Positions 23,601-47,799 are shown, numbered from the stretch's first letter. The stretch: 64,000 bases of DNA from Pecten maximus (GCF_902652985.1 NC_047027.1:24056001-24120000), one strand, 5' to 3'. Notes: generated by a model not told the origin, from the sequence alone. Made by a program: numbers and translations.

Positions 23601-26600
23601 TTTTGTTTACTACATGTTTTATCGCAAACTTTAACGAGGCAGCTTTAAAATTCTCCCATTGTCGCTTGTAAGCCGTGATTTGATTGGTCAAATAACAAAA
23701 AGTTATATTTTTCATTAGTGAAAAATATCAGAAAAGTAATATGTTTACACTCGCTCATTCTGAATGAATAATTCTCGATAATTCATTGGTAAATATGAAA
23801 TAAATAATCTTATTTTAGGAACTGTTGCTTGACCGAATTTTGTTTACTCTTTCCCTAAATACGTTACAAAATATAAAACACAATGGTGAAGTAACGTGAA
23901 CGAGGACATTTTACGAGTTATCTCGTTTTAACTTGTTGTTTTGACACTGTCTCTAAGGAATGGACGTGGATGATGTTAGAGGTCTCGTTTTCTGGACTGA
24001 CCCCGACTATAACGCCATCATGATGGCACGGATCTCAAACTTGACCCAACACTTTGTGATCGTTGACACATTAGTGGATAAACCGAGTGGTTTAGCTGTA
24101 CATCCGGAAGCCGGGTAAGTTACCTGGCCGTCGATATAGCAATGGGCAGTCATGGTAGTATGTCAGACATGAGATAGCTAGGTAGGTCACGTGATCGCCA
24201 ATATATACAAAATGTAAGTTAATATTTCAAGTGGTTTAGTAATGCATCCGGCAGCCGGGTAAGTTATATGACCGCCTATATATTAGTGGTTAAACAAGGT
24301 AGTATAGTTTTACCTCAGAAACCTAGCTAAGTCTCGTGATCGTCAGTATATCAGAGGATATACTAGGGGGCAGAGTTGTACATCCAGAAGTCACAAGATA
24401 CAACGGAATTAATTTATATCGGCGAAAAGCTATATAATGTCGATGTTGATGTCCCAAAATAGTTATTCCCATCACAAGTTATGTATCTTTTACCTTTCTT
24501 CTAGTATGAATAAACCAATTTTCATACAAATGTATTTTGTATCCATTACAATATAATATTAATATATATATTTGACGTTAATTTACCTGATACCTTGATT
24601 GTCATTCCCCCGCCTTTTTTAGTTTATTGTTTTGGACCGATTTTGGCACATCGCCAACAGTTGAACGATCCACTCTGACAGGGCGAGAACGGCGAACGAT
24701 AATAAGCGGAGGAACACCTTATATGTTGACAATAGACAGGGCTGGTAACAGGTATATTATTTATTTATCTATATATTTATCTATTTATTTATCTGATTAT
24801 TTATTTCCCTGTTGACATTTATTTATTCATTCGTTTATCTATTTAGTTATTTCCATTCATTCATATGAAAAAAAACTGAAAAAAAACTGAGAACACACAA
24901 ATGTAATTATCCAAACTTCTATGTTGAATACAATAGTCAGGCGATATTTGTCTACGTCATACATATCAACAAATACTTTGTCCCTTATTCATTCAAAGAA
25001 TTCCCGCCATAATGCCAATAGACAATGACCCGGCATTAGGTATGTTTTGGAAAAATAAGAAACTGTTATTTATCGCATCGCAACTTGTTTCTAGTAATAT
25101 GAATTTACATAGAACGTCTTCGATCAGTTAATATCTTTTCTACATGTCGTCATTCATTATAAATACAATGTTTCTTTTTTAGCTTTGTCTTTGGTTAATC
25201 AAATTATCACATGACAATCACATGACAATACACAGTTATCAAAATTATGTTGTCAATACCTTAACATGCCTGGGGATACTGCAAATTAGGGATGATTTGA
25301 CAGTAAAATGTCATTTTGATGAAATTAACAGATTATTCTGGATAAACAAGGGCGATAACTCTATTGAGTCATGTGACACTGAAGGAGAACGTCGCCACGT
25401 AATCAGTATAGACATAGGCATGTCGACAGCCTCGTTTGTTTGGAGCAGTCTGGTAGTCTATCAGGTAAGCACTATGGCTTGGAGTAAGTTTTTTGTAGTA
25501 TGGTTTCTAGTTTTTGATTGCTATCAGGTAAATATCACAGATACATATAGTCTTCTCACAGATCTATCTTCTACGACATTCACAACGACTTTTAAGACAT
25601 CGATACGTATTAATCGACGATAAAATAACGAAAATATTCAATTCAACTATTTCTTACTATTTGGTTGCCAGCAGCGGATTAGGAATTCGAATAACTAATC
25701 GCCAGCAGCGGATTGGGGATTAAGTTGTTTATGTTTAAATGTTTTTTTATTGACATTTTGACGTTGGGATTCAAATAGCGAATCCGCTGCAGCAGTCGAT
25801 TGGGGATCTAGTTACATATAAGTATTCTTCTTATAATATAATATTGGGGATTCTAATAACGAATCAGCTTCCCAGCAGTTCATGGCGGGGGTATAAAAAT
25901 ACAATTTGGACATACGAAACTGAATCCCCAATCCGCTGCTAGCGGATTCGTTATTCCAATCCCCAATAACAAATAACGAATCCGCTGCTAACTGCAGCCC
26001 GCTGATTTTTCTCGAGAACTTCGGTTTTCTCCGACAGCAGGACTTTTCGCACACTTCTATCCGGGCCAACAAGCGTGATTATTACAAGTTTATATAAATA
26101 AATAAAGTTGACAAATAAGTTCATATTTTTGCTGTTTTCACTTCTACAGCGGTTTATTATTGTCTTGAACAGACAATACACGAGATATAACCTTTCTCTG
26201 GGACACGGTGCAAAACGTTGTGGCACTTGATTGTGTTATGTCTTTAAATCATTTGAATGTTTTGCTGTTTTCTACTGTGGCTGATTTGTGCCATTTCGTC
26301 TTTTCGTATATTCGTCCCGAAAAGCCAAAACTAAATAAACTTTAATGTTCGTCTTTTCGACTTTTCGCCCCCTTTTAGAAAGACGAAAATCAAAGTTTGT
26401 TCATTTTCGTCTTTTTGGGGCGGAAAGTCGCAAAGGCGAAAAGACGAAAATAATGAACCCGAATTAAAGTCGCTAATTTGCGTGCATTTATTTCTTCTTT
26501 TCGTGGCGAAAGACGAAATATTAGTTTTGTTAATTTTCATTTGTTTCGGGGTGAAAAGACCCAAGAACGAAATGGCACAAATCAGCTACCGTAATTTTCA

Positions 26601-32600: not shown

Positions 32601-35600
32601 TCTGAGAATGGCGCGAAAAATGTTACATCACAATACGACAATTGACGTTGTGTATTGATTTGAGAAAAAGCTTTTAAATCTGAAAATCATTTTGAAAAAT
32701 TAATTATAAGCGTTGATGTAATTTTTTTAGTTTCATCGGGGTATGAAACAAATTTTGTTTGCACACTACTGTAAGAATCCGCTACGCATTTCATGCCTAA
32801 CAAAACATATAGCTATAATTTAAATTGGGTGAGTGGTTTGGCCTTGAAATTTCAAGCAACATCAGAAATAGCGATATCATTCAATATACTTTCGACAATA
32901 GATACAATATTTGATAAATGAATTTACAAAAAATGGTGAAATTATACAAGTGTGTTACATTATTCTGTTACTTGTTCTCTCAATCCTTATCTTTATTGAA
33001 GTTTTCTGTTTTTCAATTTGCATCCTTTGCCAGGTATCACTGTGGATTGGATGTCCCGTAACATCTTCTGGGTAGAACATGGATCTGAATATATATCTGT
33101 TGCGAATTACGAAGGACAATACCGGAAGTGGTTGATATCTCAGGCATGGGCTGATGACATTCGGGTCGACCCGCGCAATAAGTATTCCGTACACTAAAGT
33201 CTCAAAATAAACTACTCCTTGACCTTATAACAATCGAATTTGTTAATTATTTTAAATTTAAAAGATATGAAGTATATACTGGACTGCTGTTATATCAATA
33301 TGAAATATATTAATTTTGAACGTAGTCAGACTATTGAAGAGTTGGACTATCACATAGTCTGTGATATTTCGGACATACTTATTGCCGATGTGGAAGTACT
33401 TATGTAGCTTTCTAGCTTCGTGCTACAGTGCAATGTGTAGTGTGGCTGATTTGAAATATTGAGGGCATCGGTTTAAACCCTGAAGTACGCATATTCTATA
33501 AATCCTATAAACTATCAAGTAAACTATGAAGTATCAAGTATACCGTAAGCAATGCTTAGATAACAGAGGAGTTATTAAAAGAACAAAACATAATTACATA
33601 TTGGTTAAATGACAATTGTGCAAGTGTCATAAAATATTTCTATTATTTACAGGAAGATTTTCTGGTTGAACTCGTCCTTGGGTTTGGTAGAGGGAGCTAA
33701 CCTTGACGGGAGTGAGCATGTTAATATCGGATACACCGACAAGCAATTCGCTGCTCTTACTATCGACTGCGCAGCCCAACGACTCATTATGTTTGACCTC
33801 CATTCCAGAAAACTCGTATCCATTGACTATCTTACCACAGCGCCCCCTGAAATCATTCCACAGGAATTTTGGCACGTGACATTTATGGCTATGATAAAGG
33901 TATATTATATCACGCTCCAATTTCAAAAACAAAGCAAAAAAATAAAGAAAAACAAAATTGATAACTTTTAACAGATGTTGAACCGACTATTTATGTTTCG
34001 CAACAAATTTGTAGAGGTAACTTGTCTTTTGAAAATTTGATATTCCATTTTTAAATCTAATGTCACTAGAAACAAGAACAAATTTGAGAAAATTTATCGA
34101 ATAAAATGATATAACTGGCAATCATACTTACGTGCTAATTCTAAGCTAGGACTACGTGGTGGTGAGCAACGACTCGAGGTGTTTGACTCTCGTCAATACT
34201 CGAACTGGAATATCCCTAGCGGCACGATATGTCGCTGATGACGCCATAATTCACATGGAACTGTACCACTTCGACAATATTAGAAACACAAGTAAGTTAG
34301 AGAACGAAGTCTTTAATGCAATCTACAATTCAATTAAATACCAGAGTTTTGAACGGTGGCCAGAGGTCAAAGAAAACTTCGTTAGACCTGCGTATTGTGC
34401 TCGTGGTCAACAAGGAACAACTATTTGTTGAAGTCCAATTTGTATAATGTGCGTTATATCTTTTATACATATGATCTGTCAACGTACGGGAGATGTCGGG
34501 AGGCACTCCTAGGTATCCTGTGAAGTATTAAACAAACCCTAGCTTGGTACACCTTTTCGTCTTTGTCATGGGTTTTGTTGCCAAGAGTATATGTATTTAT
34601 CTTCATCAACACATTTTTTTTCTTCAAAAAGCCGTTTGAGATACCGATTCCTATTTTTATTTGTTCATATACTTTGATGTGATTCCAGCAATATTTTTTT
34701 GTACGTTATTTTGAGAATGCCGATGGTGAGCTTTCCCAGCTTTCCCTGGCTATATAAAAATGCTCGTCCGTCTTTTTCAAAAGTTAAATTTTCAAATAGA
34801 ACCACTGAAAATGTATATCCAAGAAATATACAAACTTGACATCAACACCTTTCAAAAGAATGTTAGATACGTTGATCCCAGTCGATTCAAATAATACTAG
34901 CAGCAGTTCCGTTCTAGGACTCGCCAGTAACGCTAAAGAAGGCGACCAAAACACAAAAAAAGGCTGAAAGAAATACCGAAATATGGATTTGAAGGTGCAA
35001 AGGAAAAAACATTTAGTACTTTATAATATATAATATACCAATGGTATAATATACAATATTGAATTTCGAGAGAACGTTAAGTACGTACATTTACTTTCTG
35101 AACCATGCTACTCACTATTTATATGAATGCAAGTTGTTTAATATCCAATCCACGCCTCTCTTTACACAGGTCCCTGTATGGAAGCCAATGGTGGATGTGA
35201 CCAGTTGTGTCTCCCTAATCCGTCCACCAGGAGCTGTCATTGTGGATTTGGTTACCACGAAACCTCAACAGATAACGGATGTTCAACTCGTAAATATTGT
35301 TTTTTCATCACTTAATATTGAAGTTCCTTCCTTAAATTTAGTTGTTCCATTCGTAAACACTGTTGTACCACGCTTAAATGTTGATGTTCCACCGGTGAAC
35401 AGTGATGTTCCTGTCGTAAAAATTGATGTTTCAACGTTCTTACACTCCTCTAGTAAACAATATCTTACATTGACATCATAATTATGGCGTGCACAAATGT
35501 ATCTCATTTGAGTTTAAGTTATATTAACAAAACAGTAGGTTATAAGTAGATTTTTAACAGATATAGTGTCACAAACGTTGCTTAATTCTGATGTTTTATC

Positions 35601-38600: not shown

Positions 38601-41600
38601 TGGACTACTTTCAACAGAAGGACTGCCATGGCTTGTGTTGCCTGGGAAGATCGTCGTTCATGATACAGGTATCGTCGTACCCAATAGCAATCAAAAACGA
38701 ATGATACAGAAGCAACATTATCAAAACATTTAACGAATGAAGTTTGCTAAGAATATTTATATATCTGTTATTTATTTTTGAAGCCCATATTCAAACACTG
38801 ATATTCTTGATTTTAATCCATTCTAAGAAAAACGGGCTATATAACGTTATAAAGAGACAATAAATTGAACTCGAAAAATTCCAACACAGATTTATTAGTT
38901 TTTCAAATATATATTTTATGTTATTTATTTTTTTGTTCTTTTATTTCTTATTCTAATTTTTTTTTTTTAATTATTTATTTATTTATTACACGTTTTATCG
39001 AATCATAAAACCATTCTGCTTAAAATCCTACAGGTATTTACCTGATTGAACAGTACCTGAGGGCAATTGTTCGAATTGATGGTAACGGTCATCAGCAGGA
39101 TATCAAACAGTTCCTGGAAGGTCACGAGCTACAGTTTATCACAGCCGACGATGCTAACCTTTATTGGACAGAACGAAATACAAAAATGATTTATAGGTAA
39201 CACTCCTCCTTCATTAACTCTGAAATATGACACATAGAGAATGTAAGTTATATAAGCTGTTGACAGGTGTTACAGGTAACAAGTTCTCATTAACTGTGAA
39301 ATCTGACACAAAGATATTTTAAGTTGTATATAAGCTTTTAATAGGTGTTACAGGTAAAGTGCCCTCTTCCTTAACTGTGACATCTGACACATAGAGAATG
39401 TACGTCATATAAGCTGGTACAGGTGTTACAGGTCCTAATTAACTGTGAAATCCAGCTGGTACAGGTGTTACAGGTAACACACCCTGCTCATTAACCATGA
39501 AATCCTGAACAAAGAACTATGCCGCAAAGAGAATGTACGTTTCAAATGCTTGAAAACAGATTAACAAAAATATACATTTTCGGATGCGATGCATCAATTT
39601 GGTTGAAATATTGTTTGAAAACATGTTTATGTTTAACACAAACAACGATTAAAACTCATTGTTTGATATGTCACAGTCGTTTACAGATAGGTAATTATTT
39701 ACAGCATACTATATCAACACTTCAAGTCCGAAATTAGGGATAGGCTTCGATTCACTTTTGATTTAAGTTTGTTCTGACTAAAATATTAAATGCACACAAA
39801 TGTCAGTGACTTTCATAATTTATACAAAACCTCTAAATAGTATGTGTAAACAAGACTTTTGTCGCTTTAGTCATGAAAATATTAAACTACACTATTATTT
39901 GACCACTTGAGTTTGCAGCATATATATATATATATATGTATATAATATATAGCTCTCCAAAAATACCCTGGTAAATATTGTATTAGACCCCTGCCATTTG
40001 AAAAACGGTGGGACTATAGGTTTAACCTCCGTTCGTCTGCCCGTCTGTCCGTCTGTCTGTCTGTCACGCAATAGTTGTCCGGACAACTACCTCCTAAAGT
40101 ATTACTCCGATCTTAGCGAAACTTGGTATACATGATCAGTATAACATGTAATTGTGCATCCAACATTTTTTTTTTTTTTTCGAAAACCCATTGTTCAAAA
40201 AAAGGGGGGAAATGAATAGGTTCACTTTTAGCTCAGGCAGGGGACTTTGTATTGCTATTGCAATACTATCCATCCTTGTTATCAATGTAATGAAATGAAC
40301 TATTTTTTTGTGATTTCAGATTAAATCTACATACAAGGGAAGAATCACAAGTAGGGCTAGAGGGAACGTTGGTACACCCTGCTGGTCTCGTGTACTTCGG
40401 ATTGACAAGGAGGACATGGCCAGGTACTTGAAACTGGTTGTAATATTATCTAGGATGATAGATGAAATCTGAATCATATTACATGCAGCATATTTCCTGT
40501 TGTACATGTAGATGCTACCTTTGTCCGCTGTGATGAACTGTACCTCATGGCTTCCTAGAAACTATACGATGTCCTTTTGGTTATAGGTATTATTGATCCG
40601 GATAACGGTTGATCTAGTTTAATAATTCTGCAGATTTACTTCTAGCTGAAATACTGATATAGATATTTTTGTATTGTTAAAAATTTTCTTCTACACAAGA
40701 AAATAAAGAAGATACAGGTAAACAAGGGTCACGTGATTCATTTGAGATGATTTACGAATTTATATTTTTGAATTAAAAATGTTATCTCAAAATGCATAGC
40801 AGATGTATTAAATACAAACAATAAGAACACTTAATTACTCTTTGTAAAGCTTACGTATATTAATTGCATTGCATGAGCGTAAAGCGTATTTTGCATTCCG
40901 TTATAGACGTAACCTGTTCCAGTCCGTGTTCCGGTACTTGCATACCAGCCGGATATGGCCTCACAATCTGTCTCCCTACCTCAAATACGCGTCATATTGA
41001 CCTCCCTTACAATGGTGTGTACTATCATATGATCAAATAGTATTTGGGATGTAAAAACAGTATTCGTATTGTCTTTGTGTTAAATTACATTAATATCATG
41101 ACCTTAAACCACAGGAGTCATCACATTGGATTTTAATGTCTTCAAATTCTCAAATGAATATAAACAAAATATCTTAATACGAATAATAGGACATCCCGCG
41201 TTATTTGTTGTAATTGCGTTTTTATTTGTACGGGCTTAACGTAACTAAAATTAGGAAAACAATAGATGTGAAAAAAAGATTAAAATGTTGACACTTTTCA
41301 TTATCAAAGTTAATACAATCCATTTGTCTGTAGATATCTGCACGGTACCAAACGACGCAGACATCATATTTGGTCGGGTGGCAGATCTGCGAGCAGGTTC
41401 CCGCGTACCTGGAGGGACAACATTCAGGATACAATGTCTGCCCGCCCATAGCATCGTAGGGTCCGACACCAGCATCTGTCGACATAGTAACTGGACAAAT
41501 ATTCCTAGGTGTAAACCAGGTAGTGATCATTTTTATTTCGAGTATTAATGTCATAGGGCAGTCACATGTAAGTCGTATTGAAGTCACATGTAAGTCATAT

Positions 41601-44600
41601 TGAAGCTACATATAAGTAATAATGAAGTCACATGTCAGTCATATTGAAGTCACATGTCAGTCATATTGAATTCTTATGTTAGTCATATTAAAGTCCCATG
41701 TCAGTCATATTGAAGTCCCATGTCAGTCATATTGAAGTCACATGTGTATCATATTGAAGTCACATGTCAGTCATTTTGAAGTCACATATAAGTTATATTG
41801 AAGTCACATATAAGTTATATTGAAGTCTCATGTCAGTCATATTGAATTCTTATGTCAGTCATATTGAAGTCAAATGTCAGTCATATTGAAGTCACATGTC
41901 AGTCATATTGAAGTCACAGCTAAGTCATATTGAAATCATATGTAAGTCATATTGAATCACATATAAGTTATACTGAAGTCACATGTAAGTCATATTGAAG
42001 TCACATTAGGAATAATAGGACAGTCAAATATTATTTCATCAATATATATGTTGTAGACACGAAAATTTACGGATCAAGAAATGGCGGTTGGACGATCTTC
42101 ACTCAATCCGGGAATTTTTATGTGTATTCATGGATGAATACAGTCAAGGTGCTGGTGATTGGCGGCGGAGGGGGTGGTTACCAGGCTACTAACCATGGCG
42201 ACAGCACCGGAAACGGTGAAAGGTCAAGGTTTGGAAACGTGCCCTCGCTTATCTCTACAGCAGGTGGGGGTCGCGGAGGGACCTCTCTGTCAGGTATCTC
42301 CTATTTTGCATTTTTGTAGTTTTAGCTTCTTCTCATTGTCAGTTTTTCAGAGATCGATTATTGCTTAAATAAGTAAACAAGAAGTGACTATTTCAAAGTT
42401 TATTGTTGAAATTTATATTACTTCAACATTCCAGTTAACAGTTATAAAATTTGAATTTTCTGCCGTTAAGTCTTTTAATGTTAAGTTCAAGAAAAGAAAA
42501 ATCCTGGTCACAGTGACCTATTTAAGCACCCGCGCAATTTTTATTCAAAATCCTTTAAAATCAACCACCATACAACTTGCATTAATGCCAGTCAATGGAT
42601 GAGGATCAAGACTTGAAATATGTAAGTTGCCGACCCCCTAAGGACACATTTTGCTGGTGACCGGGCCAAAAACAGTGCCATGCATATGTGCATTTTCTCT
42701 TTACATTGCTTTTTTGCTCATTCGCCGGATGTATCGCTCCGTTAACAGTCAGGGCCATGTTAAGACGGAAACTCCTTACTTACAGTAGCTGGTGGCTACC
42801 TAACAGAGCACATAGGGGAGGCATGTTACATGCAATCGAGGGCAATTTAGTTAAAGTGCTATGTCCAAAGACACAACCACGTCATCACAGACCGTCCATT
42901 TCTCAGTTTTCCGAGAAACACAAATCGCCAAGGGAAAGAAGCGTCATTGGATGGTCCCCTGAGGCAATGTAGGTCAATGGTTTAGCCGAAATATGGTAGC
43001 TATAATATCTGGAAAGCTGGGTTAAGAACACATCATTTTTATCAGGTTCTTTTGCCGTCATTTTAAGCTATTTCGAACATTATTTGTGTGGACCGTAGAC
43101 AGTTTAAAACATAATATATCATTGCATTACATTACTCTAGGTCAAATCAGGGTCTGACCAGCTATCATTTTTTCAGAGCATCTTCTACATACATAAGGCA
43201 CCATAAACGAAGGACGCATATGGACATCAGCCTACAACTCTAGTCCAAACTACACACTGACAATAACCTTTTATAGTCTTTTATATATGACAAGGGTTAA
43301 ATGTAAAATAAAACTCCATCGCAGTATTTACCTTGAAAATGCCTGGAAAAAATACCTTGAAAATTGTATGACGAGACCTTACATGTATATGTAATCTAAT
43401 GGCAAGTTGTCTCTCTTTATGAGCCATAATCGCATGTTATCCACTGTTTGACAAATACTCAGACGTTTATGACATGACCTTCCTTATTAGTCCCCTGCCG
43501 TTTGAAAAACGGGGGAACTATAGGCTTAGCCTCCGTCCGTCTGTCTGTCTGTCTGTCTCTGTCTGTCACGCAATAGTTGTCCGGACAACTCCTCCTAAAC
43601 TACTACTCCGATCTTAACAAAAAATGGGAAATGAATAGGTGCACTTCTAGCTCAGGCAGGGGACTTTGAGCTCAGTCAGTGTTAGTTGGTGAAACATTTC
43701 CTCTGGATTTTTCCATATTATCCTCTTTTTTTATCCAAACCCTAACTATCACCAGTTGTTGAAGACTGTTTGGACAATTTCGCAATTTATGGATACTGTT
43801 TGTAATCAAAGCATACCTGGGAAAGTATGTTGCAAGAGGAGAACGGAAAACATTACAAGTTGAATAAACAATGCGAACAATATTCCTTATGTTAGGGATC
43901 TGACAGTTGACCATAATATTCACTAGAGCTTTCAACTGCCGAATACGACCATTTCCTGACTGGATAACACAGTGCTCCTTTGTTACATGTCTAGATCCAA
44001 TGAACTCCCCAGTGGGATGCTGAATCACACCTTTCTTTAAAAGCATGATATTTCTATTTTGATTCGAAAATCATTCAGCAGTTCTGTTACATAAAGGAAA
44101 CTACTGTTAATATGTAGAATGTCATTATTTTGAAACCATGTCTTAATATATCTACATTTCTGAATACATCCCCTGCATTGCCAGCTGCGATTTCTTTTCG
44201 AACGCTATGATTTTGCAAACAAAAAAAAAAAAAAACAAACAAAAAATCCCACGAACTAGGCCCAAGTGGGACAACCGTGAAATATTAGCACAGTTTGATT
44301 TATAAAGTATACAATATTGTTCTAATAAGTCTAATATGTTAAGTAGGAGATTAAGCAAAGAGTAAGAATCTAAAAAAAAAATGAATGTTACAGTAATTTC
44401 TAAATTTAATTTTTGATGTGTCGAAAGGTGGAGCTGGTGGAGTGGGCGAAAGGAACTCTGGTTCCGCCGGAAATTACTCCAATGTCACGTGTTCTCGTGG
44501 AGGTTCCATATGGAATAATGTGCCAAGCAAGACACACAGCTTGTTCTGTGCCAACGACTACGGTTCGCATAGCTGTTTCTCAGGTAGGCAAAAGTAAAAT

Positions 44601-45388
44601 ATCCAGTCCAATTTGAAAATGAAAGATTGAAGATGAAAATACTCATAAGTTATATTATAGAATATTTCTATGTGTTTTGTTTTGTGTTTAATGATGAATT
44701 GACCCAAGCCGGTTATTTCGCGTAAATAATATTAACGGAAACAGTAATCAGCTTAGTAATATTTCTCCGGAATAATTTAGACTACTATCAAAATATATGT
44801 TACATTAACGTTATATACATGGTATATTGTATAACACACCACGCTATCTTCTTGTCATACCTTACAGACGAGAGGTAAACAATAAAAGTTGTGCAACACG
44901 TCATCTCTTAAGGTACATGATTTTATACATCACACTATTTCATCTTGTTGGTATGGATTACAGATGAGGCGTAAACAATAATGTTTACAATTACCATATC
45001 GCCTCTATAGATAAGTGTCACATTTCACCCCTCTCACGTCTTTTGTTATTTATTTATAGAAATACCTGACGAGGCCTATAGTACTGTCAATCCAAGAACA
45101 AGACGTGACTGCCGCATCGACACAACATGCAAAAATTTCGGCGACGGGTCGGAGTCGCGACAGGGTGGATCAGGAGGGGGAGGTGGCTACTCAAGAACAA
45201 GCCGATCAATCTCCGCCTATCGCAATAGTCTGATCCCTGTAGAAGTAGGGCGTGGTGGAGAGCCGTCTTACGCAATTTCCGGAGGGGGCGTGGTCATCAT
45301 CTGGTGGGGTTGGGACGAAGAACTGAGCGATGTGGAGACAGCCGACATAGAAGCGCTTTGTTCTCAAACGACTAATGTAGAACCTTAA
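20604..45388 (+). CDS. LRP-related mosaic protein, probably secreted: 3 x YWTD beta-propeller with EGF-type spacers, Sushi/CCP, C-terminal glycine-rich domain; ~1210 aa plus unresolved start exon. Exons: 20604-20689, 22091-22201, 23056-23122, 23958-24114, 24623-24751, 25332-25464, 26609-26750, 28348-28413, 30828-31012, 32375-32456, 33034-33181, 33653-33899, 34150-34291, 35170-35289, 36104-36267, 37231-37321, 37717-37876, 38541-38668, 39034-39196, 40320-40423, 40907-41014, 41334-41519, 42057-42293, 44428-44583, 45060-45388
   Basis: All 25 exons have AG/GT borders and chain in phase with no stop (3641 nt). Motifs: GMDVDDVRGLVFWTD, GLAVHPEAGLLFWTDFGTSPTVERS, ITVDWMSRNIFWVE, AVAYDDRAKYIYWSD, NLYWTE; EGF PCMEANGGCDQLCLPNPSTRSCHCGFGY; Sushi CTVP...IQCLP...SICRHSNWTNIPRC; Gly-rich FTQSGNF...VKVLVIGGGGGG...GGSGGGGGY...IPVEVGRGG...GGVVIIWW. 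Exons 20604-20689 and 28348-28413 are the least certain. Confidence 0.85.
25665..25995. repeat. Foldback-like cluster of direct and inverted CAGCAGCGGATTGGGGATT motifs
   Basis: Motif repeated on + (25669, 25703, ~25790) and as AATCCCCAATCCGCTGCT / GAATCCGCTGC on - (25780, 25923, 25978). Confidence 0.6.
26135..26225 (+). pseudogene. Dead duplicate (pseudo-exon) of exon 26609-26750
   Basis: Reads SGLLLS*TDNTR against GRLLLSWSDHNR in the live exon (TGG to TGA); shares the TTTTCAC acceptor context. Confidence 0.6.
26275..26591. mobile_element. MITE with ~25-bp TIRs (CGGTGGCTGATTTGTGCCATTTCGT), TA TSD
   Basis: TIRs and TA on both sides; second copy at 47800-48178. Confidence 0.85.
27060..27409. 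mobile_element. Hairpin-ended element (about 160-bp palindrome 27251-27409 centred on AACCGCTTCGCGGTT)
   Basis: Long inverted repeat TAAGAATTAACAT...ATGTTAATCCTTA; upstream CATTGGCTGA motifs. Confidence 0.7.
30080..30360. repeat. Degenerate ~40-bp minisatellite (CTAGAAAGGCGAAACAGTTGTAAGAACTG...)
   Basis: About 6-7 recurring units. Confidence 0.65.
30652..31779. repeat. Near-identical ~127-bp direct repeats (30652-30778 and 31653-31779) flanking exon 30828-31012
   Basis: Identical apart from about one homopolymer-length difference. Confidence 0.9.
32528..32790. mobile_element. Hairpin-ended repeat, copy 2 (right arm truncated)
   Basis: Matches 5412-5690. Confidence 0.75.
35305..35440. repeat. 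Degenerate 21-bp intronic minisatellite
   Basis: 7-residue periodicity in translation (LNIEVPS LNLVVPF VNTVVPR LNVDVPP VNSDVPV VKIDVST) downstream of the 35290 donor. Confidence 0.6.
36704..36975 (+). mobile_element. pearl/HINE-like (Helentron-associated) non-autonomous element
   Basis: AAGGTGA.CTA...GATCAC head, CGTC-type microsatellite, TTTACATTTTAACTTCTTCTC core, 3' CAGGTAGC...GGTCCATGGGCGTCTTG end. Confidence 0.6.
39190..39545. repeat. ~78-bp tandem repeat starting at a splice donor (AGGTAACA...TTAACTGTGAAATCTGACAC)
   Basis: 4-5 imperfect units immediately after exon 39034-39196. Confidence 0.8.
39980..40280 (+). mobile_element. pearl/HINE-like element, family 2 copy 1
   Basis: Subterminal IR AG(A/T)CCCCTGCC...GGCAGGGGACT, (GTCT/GTCC)n tract, 3' hairpin GTATTGC..GCAATAC. 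Confidence 0.75.
41561..42006. repeat. 22-bp minisatellite (GTCACATGTCAGTCATATTGAA), ~20 copies
   Basis: Directly visible; fills most of the intron between the Sushi and Gly-rich exons. Confidence 0.95.
43483..43668 (+). mobile_element. pearl/HINE-like element, family 2 copy 2
   Basis: Matches 39980-40250 (AGTCCCCTGCC...GGCAGGGGACT). Confidence 0.75.
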
Positions 45389-47799
45389 AGTTTTCCTTCG
45401 GAGAAAAAAGCAATGCCATTCTATTGTTAAATTCAAATCGTTCAAAGAATCTTAAAAGAAGAAAATATATTGACTGTACACAATGATGAAACGGAGTAGT
45501 CATAAAAAGAGCTTTTGTTACCAGATCTAGAAAATTACTCCATCATCCAAGCACTCTCAGTGCATTGAAGCGCTGTTGTCTGCTACACATGAACTACCCT
45601 ATTACAGTCCATTCCAATTGAAAGGCCATTCTTGATCATTTTCTTTGAAGTTATTATGATATTATTGTTTATTTTTCAAAACATAAGGATAAGCTTTCGT
45701 GTTTTGTAGTCCCCCCTTTCCTCCTTTTTATATAGAACTTGAAACTCTGTCCAAATGCAAACAAACACACGTATATCAGGGTTTTTATTACATGTATACA
45801 TGGTTGCAATTTTGCTGTACATATTAAATTAAAGTTTTTACCGATGTCTTTGCGTTATTCGTATGTGGGGAAGTGGGCAAGCATTTTGTCCTGATGATGC
45901 AATATTTGCATACATGTACATGTATATCAACATCGTGATGATTTGAACATTTTCACATGTCTGATAACTAGATAATTGAACAATGTTACAAAGTGACTCA
46001 ATGACGTAATACTGTGTCCCCTGAATTTGAAATCTGGTAATGGGAATTTCTAACTAGCAGAAGTTTAACATCCCCTCGCCAGTACATTTAAGGAACAATT
46101 CATTTACTATTTTCACGAAGTTCACTACCCTTCATTAGACCATACAAGCAACGGAATTGAAAGGCAATCCTTCAAAACATCAGTGTATTGTAAGTATTAA
46201 TGTTTATTTACGGAAAACTGATGCTTAGGTGTCAATAACAAAGGTAACCATAAGTTTGTTAAGAGCTGATTCTGGTTATCAACTTCATAACTTAATTGTA
46301 TGTTGTAAAAATAAATGGTGCTGGTGGTGGTGTTGGGGGGGGGGGGGGGGGGGGGGGGGTTCACATCATGGAATCACATCGTTCTTTTAACTAAGATCTA
46401 GTTGTGTGTTTGTGTTAGGTTTTTTCTTCTGCTTTTTTAATATCTATGGATATTTACAAAATATGTACATTGAAATACAATCTTTTTCATGCTTTAATTT
46501 TGTTTTTTGCTATCTTTGGTTCTTATCCTACTTTTCAGTGCATCATAATACAATTCAAACTTTCCATGACAAATTAGCTGATTACCTCATTAAATAGGAA
46601 CACTAGAAATAATACTATTAACCAGACGACTGTACGTAATGTGTATTACTGCGTTGTATATTCTTGAAGACTTCCAAGTGGCTATCGTGTTGCTAAAATG
46701 CGCATTTTTCCCCAGTTATTTTGATTTTGAGATGCCTTCGACGAGAAAGCATGCAGAGGGAACCTTATACAATGGAATTCTTCTTCTTATATTGTGAGAA
46801 ACCGAGAACTGTTACACTAATACACTGTTTTATACATACCACACATCCAGTATTTACATTACAGAATAACAGTAATTACGTATCGGATAAACTATGGCCA
46901 GATGTTTGTCATAAATTACAGGAGGATGATATAAAAAAAATATTGTATATCACGTAAAGACGTTAACATGCCTACCTTGTTTACAAAATCCTCTCTGCTA
47001 TCCATTTTTCAGCAGTAACGTGTGTATGTAGGCACTTGCCCAGATCATTTGTTGAAGAATCTTTCCCAGACAAACTTCATGGCTGGCATTGTACATATCG
47101 TTGTTTGCATGTTAATATCTTACGTTAGCACGGACAAGTCCTCGATGACAATACAGCAGCGAGTTACTGCGCTGGAAAGAAAAAATCATGGACTTCAAAC
47201 CCAGAGTCAGCAATTAGTGGATTGTGTTATGAACATTTCGTCAGACTATTCTGAATCAGTAAAGTGCGCCAAGAACATCGTTACAGCAGTCTTCTCCTGT
47301 GAGTAATATCTGCTTTTGTTTATTCTGCTTTATCATGTATGCTTATTGACCAATGAAAGGTTGCGGAATTTTCATGCCGGATCTATTTTAATACCTTGTG
47401 ACTATTCATTATATCCCGTTCGAGATCATTGTCGTACATTAACAACCCATAAACAGATTTGTGTCTACACCACATTATATCATAACACAAATTTCAGCAT
47501 AGGATTACCCATGTGTTACCGTCTAGTTGTATCAGTATATAATCGTATAGGAAATGTCACATAATATTTTATTTCTAGAACGATATATCAACATGTAAGA
47601 GAAAAATTTGGTCTCAAACTCGTAAGAGTAATCCTCATGACAAATCTTCAATTTGGTACCATTTATGTATTTTCTAAGCGTCAGGATAGTGACGAGCATA
47701 GGAAAAGGTTGTCCCGTAAAACAGCTTAGGTGTAGAGTGCTATCTCTGTAAGTCAGTTTGCATCTTCTAAATAATTTTATTAATTGAGTGAAGCATGTA

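Follow-up and report, generated by a model that had tools for sequence, protein, structure and literature searches.

What kind of domain ends the protein encoded by an LRP5-like gene of the scallop Pecten maximus, and where did it come from? The window analysed here, 64,000 nucleotides of scallop DNA (GCF_902652985.1 NC_047027.1:24056001-24120000), carries at positions 42057-45388 three exons that encode a glycine-rich domain and form the 3′ end of a gene that spans 20.5-45.7 kb in about 25 exons. Phage tail-fibre tips have the TNF-like/glycine-rich (TG) fold, and among animal proteins it is known in the cytokine receptors ALK and LTK. A first-pass annotation of this DNA, made from the sequence alone, had likened the domain to glycine-rich domains of phage tail and bacterial proteins and proposed either that it was acquired horizontally long ago or that it is a little-known relative, of animal origin, of the ALK/LTK domain. 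We find that it is a real, expressed and conserved bivalve domain. With a probability of roughly 0.72 for the explanation as a whole, we read it as a divergent TG member of the Gly_rich_2 type, nearest to phage, which closes a secreted protein made of a signal peptide, YWTD propellers with EGF modules, one Sushi module and then the domain itself, of about 215-240 residues.

Three spliced exons encode the domain

The three exons read in the first-pass annotation, with the motifs quoted there, were all located on the plus strand, where they are separated by GT..AG introns and joined by RNA-supported splices. Exon A (42057-42293, AG/GT flanks) carries WTIFTQSGNFYV, VKVLVIGGGGGG, GNGERSRFG and TAGGGRGG, and encodes the N-terminal part of the TNF-like/glycine-rich domain: the first β-strands, a run of six glycines, SxFG and GGGRGG. 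Exon B (44428-44583) continues with a glycine-rich loop (GGAGGVGE..) and the first half of a Cys-rich insert, and exon C (45060-45388) provides the second half of this insert, the GGSGGGGGY, IPVEVGRGG and GGGVVIIWW strands, an acidic tail and the stop codon, which is read from the sequence at 45386-45388.

RNA evidence was drawn from assembled contigs of four public runs carrying the scallop's species label and compared over 42000-45700. The splice 42293|44428, in which the joint skips the 2134 nt of intron 42294-44427, is present in two runs (X2 and X4), and the splice 44583|45060, which skips the 476 nt of intron 44584-45059 within the Cys-rich insert, in all four. At each of these two junctions the intron splits a codon in phase 1 (G|GT for Gly and G|AA for Glu). 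Also, the last 30 nt of the preceding Sushi exon (end 41519) are joined directly to 42057 in RNA contigs, a single contig of 1494 nt comprises exons A, B and C together with the 3′ untranslated region, and contigs of X2, X4 and X8 carry this region from 45389 to at least 45700 on the same strand. The gene is transcribed and exons A-C are spliced as read. The spliceosomal introns and Cys-rich insert anticipated from the genomic sequence are real, and the introns are removed in the RNA contigs.

These observations bear on one account of a phage-like domain in an animal assembly, namely bacterial or phage contamination or a recent assembly insertion. Only the phage similarity of the domain speaks for it. 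However, several RNA studies yielded contigs from which the spliceosomal introns have been spliced out, the exons adjoin those for YWTD, EGF and Sushi modules, orthologues with the same introns are present in three other bivalve genome assemblies, and in GC content the stretch resembles the window around it. Contamination is ruled out by splicing, by synteny with animal exons and by the orthologues in four bivalve genomes, and we give this account as a whole practically no weight.

A conserved bivalve family with shared introns

Exons were searched one by one, and work on the full domain relied on natural orthologue proteins. Exon A served as query in an exhaustive phmmer search of 1.84 billion representatives, a library that takes in the animal proteins of NCBI and UniRef, and eight matches were returned. 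The best, P0001, is a Mizuhopecten yessoensis protein of 1234 aa (XP_021369029) labelled 'low-density lipoprotein receptor-related protein 5-like'. By tblastn it is colinear with positions 20552-45385 of the window, with identities of 75% for exon A (residues 999-1074), 64% for exon B and 74.5% for exon C. The other bivalve relatives are P0005 from Solemya velum, P0007 from Mytilus coruscus and P0009 from Mytilus californianus, the last of which keeps the order YWTD, Sushi, glycine-rich. Two further sequences, P0003 and P0006, are matching exon fragments from Logan and ENA contigs whose species could not be read. P0002, P0004 and P0008 were rejected as false positives, being repetitive or unrelated proteins with many short matching stretches and unrelated Pfam families. 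No non-bivalve relative was found in this search, made with exon A only.

In an alignment of the Mizuhopecten, Mytilus coruscus, Mytilus californianus and Solemya velum sequences the domain is in register, with a common order of motifs. Its N-terminal part is made of the strand G-W/Y-x-I-F-T-E-S-G-x-F-Y-V-Y-P, a run of six glycines, A-G-D-G..S.F and G-G-K-G-G-T. A variable Cys-rich insert follows, and the C-terminal part consists of G-G-G-G-G-x-S, V-G-K/R-G-G-x-P-S-Y and the final strand G-G-V-V-I-I-x-W. The bivalve version is marked by a Cys-rich insert, lineage-variable and presumably disulfide-bonded, between glycine-rich loops.

Mapping of the proteins to their own loci revealed two intron positions common to scallop, Mytilus and Solemya. 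The first lies between the Sushi exon and the domain, and the second, in phase 1, follows G-G-K-G-G-T-x-x-x-G and corresponds to scallop intron 42294-44427. Together with the Sushi adjacency, which is common to all bivalve members, the two shared positions indicate that the module is ancient in Bivalvia; the common introns place the module with its first intron before the protobranch-autobranch split.

Intron 44584-45059 of the scallop is absent from the corresponding place in Mytilus and Solemya, where a single terminal exon is found instead; this extra intron was either gained in the scallop lineage or lost in Mytilus and Solemya. The Solemya velum locus (JBHNWI010000258.1) shows a further peculiarity. 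Residues 1-230 of P0005, a model that is without the YWTD part, correspond to part of a type B DNA polymerase of the organellar/viral kind (Pfam DNA_pol_B_2), typical of Maverick/Polinton-like elements, joined to the Sushi and glycine-rich exons. The gene model of P0005 has probably been fused with what is left of a mobile element next to it.

Sequence similarity to phage Gly_rich_2 proteins

Against the Pfam profile Gly_rich_2 (PF21722), whose gathering cut-off is 24.3 bits, exon A scored 17.2 bits (E 0.0053, profile positions 3-39), and P0001, P0003, P0007 and P0005 scored 19.0, 19.1, 14.1 and 8.9 bits respectively. Gp24 of cyanophage Pam3 (ON014755), a protein of solved structure, itself attains 23.8 bits over the whole profile, also under the cut-off; the PF21722 model is therefore weak even for a structurally solved member.

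Alignments gave a stronger signal. We compared the bivalve alignment by hhalign with a phage alignment of 14 gp24 homologues and obtained a probability of 62-70% and E-values of 4e-5 to 7e-5 over 37 columns. The matched stretch is the N-terminal strand motif, hydrophobic-T-x-S-G-x-F/W-x-V-P...V-x-V, followed by 5-6 glycines. With the domain only, the score was 39.1, against 13.3 ± 2.2 (maximum 18.7) for column shuffles and 22.1 ± 3.3 (maximum 32) for block shuffles that keep the glycine runs, the real score lying more than 5 standard deviations above the latter and above all 120 shuffled controls. A greedy alignment (mact 0.01) extended colinearly over 210 columns and paired the C-terminal strands with those of gp24, with low posterior confidence outside the N-terminal motif. 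Similarly, a hidden Markov model (HMM) of the phage set gave 16-19 bits to P0003, P0005 and P0006 versus at most 2.7 for 300 composition-matched decoys. The nearest protein-atlas clusters, both for exon C (181 shared features) and for the P0001 domain, were phage PF21722 clusters (0.89), a result to be taken as a lead only.

Three pattern-based searches yielded nothing further: a word search with exon A returned zero candidates, one with residues 615-843 of P0009 returned 2744, none of them scoring, and a pattern search of viral contigs with P0007 matched 8 patterns, none of which was confirmed. In the scallop genome itself (918,306,378 bases in 3983 contigs searched) exon C is single copy and no paralogue was found; three PF21722 matches and one exon-A match there correspond to poly-Gly or simple repeats.

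These repeats illustrate another way of explaining the phage likeness, as a compositional resemblance of a low-complexity glycine-rich tail, for example a structural or shell-matrix one, with no defined fold. The glycine content of the region is high, HMMER bias corrections take away most of the score, and the other Pfam matches in the genome are pure low complexity. On the other hand, the hhalign score exceeded 120 of 120 shuffles, those keeping the glycine runs included, and the non-glycine motifs and hydrophobic β-strands stay in register across bivalve orders.

A predicted jelly roll closest to phage fibre and tail-tip proteins

Folds were examined on AlphaFold2 models of the Mytilus coruscus protein P0007 and of the Solemya protein. 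Built on the family alignment, the P0007 model has a core of eight β-strands with a predicted local distance difference test score (pLDDT) of 70-90. When compared with 48,161 solved chains, it matched best the Pam3 fibre (Z 8.4, root-mean-square deviation 3.0, 117 residues, 26% identity), and next the Bxb1 tail tip (Z 7.5, deviation 2.7, 115 residues, 28% identity), the third match reaching only Z 4.8. The weaker Solemya model gave Z 6.1 and 24% identity with Pam3, and Z 5.7 and 30% identity with Bxb1. The eight predicted strands, and structural matches that are specific and span the whole core, also argue against a foldless tail, which we now hold to be very improbable.

The best structural match, Pam3 gp24 (PDB 7YPX/7YFW), shares with the bivalve model a TNF-like β-sandwich with interleaved glycine-rich loops. 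It has the same N-terminal strand motif with five to six glycines behind it, and in the greedy alignment, of low confidence beyond that motif, the two domains are colinear and closed by a hydrophobic strand. In the phage, this domain is the receptor-recognition tip (PMC9608196); the glycine-rich motifs of the fibre form a hydrogen-bonded lattice, and its variable distal tip is proposed to bind the host receptor (PMC9608196). Gp24 is similar to gp38 of phage S16 and superposes on the ALK ectodomain of C. elegans (PMC9608196). There are also differences. Gp24 forms a trimer that an N-terminal helical bundle, not this domain, holds together, and it needs the chaperone gp25; its domain has neither cysteines nor an insert, whereas the bivalve domain contains a Cys-rich insert of about 50-60 residues, sits after a Sushi module and is encoded in 2-3 exons. 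As for mycobacteriophage Bxb1 (PDB 9D93 chain Qa), it is matched by both bivalve models over 114-115 residues, and its Qa chain differs in belonging to a siphophage tail-tip complex.

Resemblance to animal TNF and C1q proteins was also observed. C1q, Cbln, APRIL, BAFF and TNF matched the Solemya model with Z 5.0-5.8 at 5-13% identity, and no TNF or C1q Pfam match was found in the window exons, in P0001 or in the other bivalve members. This resemblance is at the level of the fold only.

Several results weigh against the assignment to the phage type. On the sequence side, no bivalve sequence attains the gathering score of PF21722, and we therefore file the domain as a divergent relative, not as a certified Gly_rich_2 member. 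The confident hhalign stretch covers only the 37 N-terminal columns. A PHROGs search gave only E 0.004-0.2 to tail and virion families, which is not significant, tblastn of P0007 against 50,697 phage records gave no match, BLASTP of P0007 and P0001 against Pam3 gp24 aligned nothing within the domain, and PDB sequence searches with P0007 and with the bivalve profile (A1) returned nothing significant for it. On the structural side, the alignment given to AlphaFold2 was shallow (9 rows, about 5 of them independent), and the two models, with mean pLDDT values of 58 and 43, leave the Cys-rich insert unmodelled. At Z 5-6 the Solemya model matches CD109, C3 and a large number of TNF/C1q jelly rolls as well as it does the phage proteins, and Z 8.4 is the upper edge of the range reachable by models without true relatives.

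The phage/bacterial identity proposed in the first-pass annotation nevertheless gains support from the convergence of sub-cut-off Pfam matches, atlas clusters, hhalign and phage tail proteins as the best structural matches. At the profile level, hhalign placed the domain with the gp24 homologues well above shuffles, but Pfam stayed below its cut-off and PHROGs was not significant. Where the first-pass annotation had thought of a polyglycine bundle, the models predict, at moderate confidence, a TNF-like jelly roll with glycine-rich loops and with phage proteins as top matches.

Relation to the animal ALK/LTK domain

The TG domain of ALK/LTK (PF12810; PDB 7N00, 7LS0, 7NWZ, 7LIR) is of the same fold class and is an extracellular ligand-binding module of an animal protein. 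It belongs to receptor tyrosine kinases, in which EGF-like, transmembrane and kinase parts follow it, while the bivalve protein terminates at its domain and the stop codon is followed by 3′ untranslated sequence. In Foldseek (3Di+AA) the top 19 PDB matches of the P0007 model were all ALK/LTK ectodomains, with weak values (E 5e-3 to 0.16, TM 0.13-0.17). VIA-align of this model with ALK gave Z 3.4-3.5 over 92-100 residues at 18-21% identity, a much weaker structural match than those of the phage proteins. PF12810 (ALK_LTK_GRD) matched neither the three exons, searched at E<=10, nor P0005, P0007 and P0009, searched at E<=5. The scallop has its own ALK/LTK-type glycine-rich exon elsewhere, on the minus strand of contig C3 at 44082161-44082328 (L012:1501-1668), which scores 28.8 bits with PF12810, above the cut-off. 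The domain of the window is therefore not the ALK/LTK domain of the scallop, and is at most a distant ALK/LTK relative within the same fold class. The comparable ALK/LTK fold invoked in the first-pass annotation thus holds for the fold class, but the match is the more distant one.

Could the domain still descend vertically, as an old animal TG domain, a diverged paralogue of the ligand-binding domain of ALK/LTK, that was kept only in bivalves or became unrecognisable elsewhere? The Foldseek ranking and the VIA-align match to ALK (21% identity) are compatible with this, and so are an extracellular architecture typical of animals and the conserved phase-1 introns. However, the Foldseek values are weak, PF12810 fails to match, the phage proteins are far higher in Z (8.4 and 7.5) and in identity, and the exon A search found no relative in other animals. 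We consider vertical descent unlikely, while leaving it a substantial share of the probability.

Did the domain come from a phage or bacterium?

For the domain itself the balance leans to the phage/bacterial type. Its origin is a separate question, and one possible answer is horizontal: an early ancestor of the bivalves would have taken it up from a phage or bacterium and placed it after the Sushi exon of an LRP-like gene, and introns and the Cys-rich insert would have been added later. The closest profile and structural relatives are phage proteins (24-30% identity), the nearest atlas clusters are almost all viral, true relatives were found only in bivalves by the exon A search, the gene is single copy in the scallop genome, and the ALK-type domain of animals is encoded by another gene and matches less closely. 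Against this, the search used one 78-residue exon and would miss relatives under about 35-40% identity in other phyla; no phage or bacterial protein was significant in it, so that no donor lineage comes to light; closeness to phage was judged from profile and structural comparisons; the fold class is already present in animals (ALK/LTK), which makes vertical descent with divergence possible; and the common introns say only that any transfer predates the Solemya-scallop split. We therefore entertain the horizontal origin tentatively, at somewhat less than even odds.

A fuller version of the horizontal scenario is more doubtful than transfer as such, and also than vertical descent. In this version, a phage-fibre tip or a bacterial relative of it moved to the bivalve stem more than about 450-500 million years ago, was spliced behind the Sushi exon, gained introns and a disulfide-rich insert, and now recognises bacterial surfaces. 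If true, a phage 'host-recognition' device would have been domesticated by an animal.

The gene upstream and its LRP5-like label

All upstream features lie on the plus strand. About 21 exons at 20552-41037, defined by colinear tblastn of P0001, encode the N-terminal region, YWTD/LDL-receptor class B propeller repeats and EGF-like modules. In stop-free frames, Pfam matches to Ldl_recept_b occur at 23957-24115, 24591-24812 and 33000-33194, and a match to FXa_inhibition/EGF_LRP2 at 35142-35312. The Sushi (complement control protein, CCP) exon directly 5′ of the glycine-rich domain occupies 41334-41519 (Pfam 22.1 bits versus a cut-off of 20.7), with splice signals AG at 41332-33 and GT at 41520-21. 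P0001 has a hydrophobic, signal-like N-terminus, its C-terminus is at the glycine-rich domain and no later hydrophobic segment follows; the scallop protein stops 27 residues beyond the domain, and P0001 ends alike.

The N-terminal 900 residues of the scallop and Mizuhopecten proteins resemble LRP5/6 in having class B (YWTD) repeats and EGF modules of the LRP type, and PDB sequence searches with P0007 and profile A1 gave LRP6 matches to the propellers and nothing else. In the bivalve protein we detected neither LDL-A repeats nor a transmembrane segment nor a cytoplasmic tail, and the C-terminal Sushi and glycine-rich module is foreign to LRP5/6. The name 'LRP5-like' therefore covers the propellers only.

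Repeats within the gene

A 22-bp minisatellite (41560-42006, 20.4 copies, 85% matches, consensus AGTCACATGTAAGTCATATTGA), detected by Tandem Repeats Finder, takes up the greater part of the intron that separates exon A from the Sushi exon. A short dispersed repeat with a GTCT-rich middle is present in two introns, as copies at 39981-40249 and 43485-43668 that are 86-89% identical. Contig depth in the RNA runs over the copy at 43485-43668 is 30-100 times that of the exons, and the repeat is therefore abundant, transcribed and probably SINE-like (short interspersed nuclear element). Finally, on the minus strand an intronic stretch at 40505-40609 gave a weak tblastn match to residues 822-856 of P0001 (46% over 35 residues, E 0.003), and may be a decayed inverted duplicate of the adjacent YWTD exon 39030-39197.

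Proposed function and significance

By analogy with phage fibres and ALK, the domain would bind a ligand, as in the ligand-binding tip suggested in the first-pass annotation. The TG fold is a jelly-roll β-sandwich in which glycine-rich stretches, packed as a lattice, form the connecting loops, and in the bivalve protein the distal loops together with the Cys-rich insert would make the contact. The insert, the most variable part, appears to lie between glycine-rich loops, in a place that corresponds to the variable distal tip of the phage domain. The likeliest ligand would be a glycan or a microbial or cell-surface structure, since the protein is secreted and without a membrane anchor, and the Sushi module and propellers would serve as a stalk or as secondary interaction modules.

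In the literature searched we found neither an account of such a domain from molluscs nor any reference to PF21722. The family has remained hidden under the 'LRP5-like' label because it falls below the Pfam threshold. Both kinds of glycine-rich domain occur in the scallop genome, each in a gene of its own. A second, independent TG family of animals would be new: secreted, fused to YWTD propellers and Sushi, and nearer to the phage type than to ALK. For research on bivalve immunology and adhesion it is a candidate for a recognition protein whose binding tip would be unusual, and it provides a concrete case for asking whether animals have domesticated a phage receptor-binding module.

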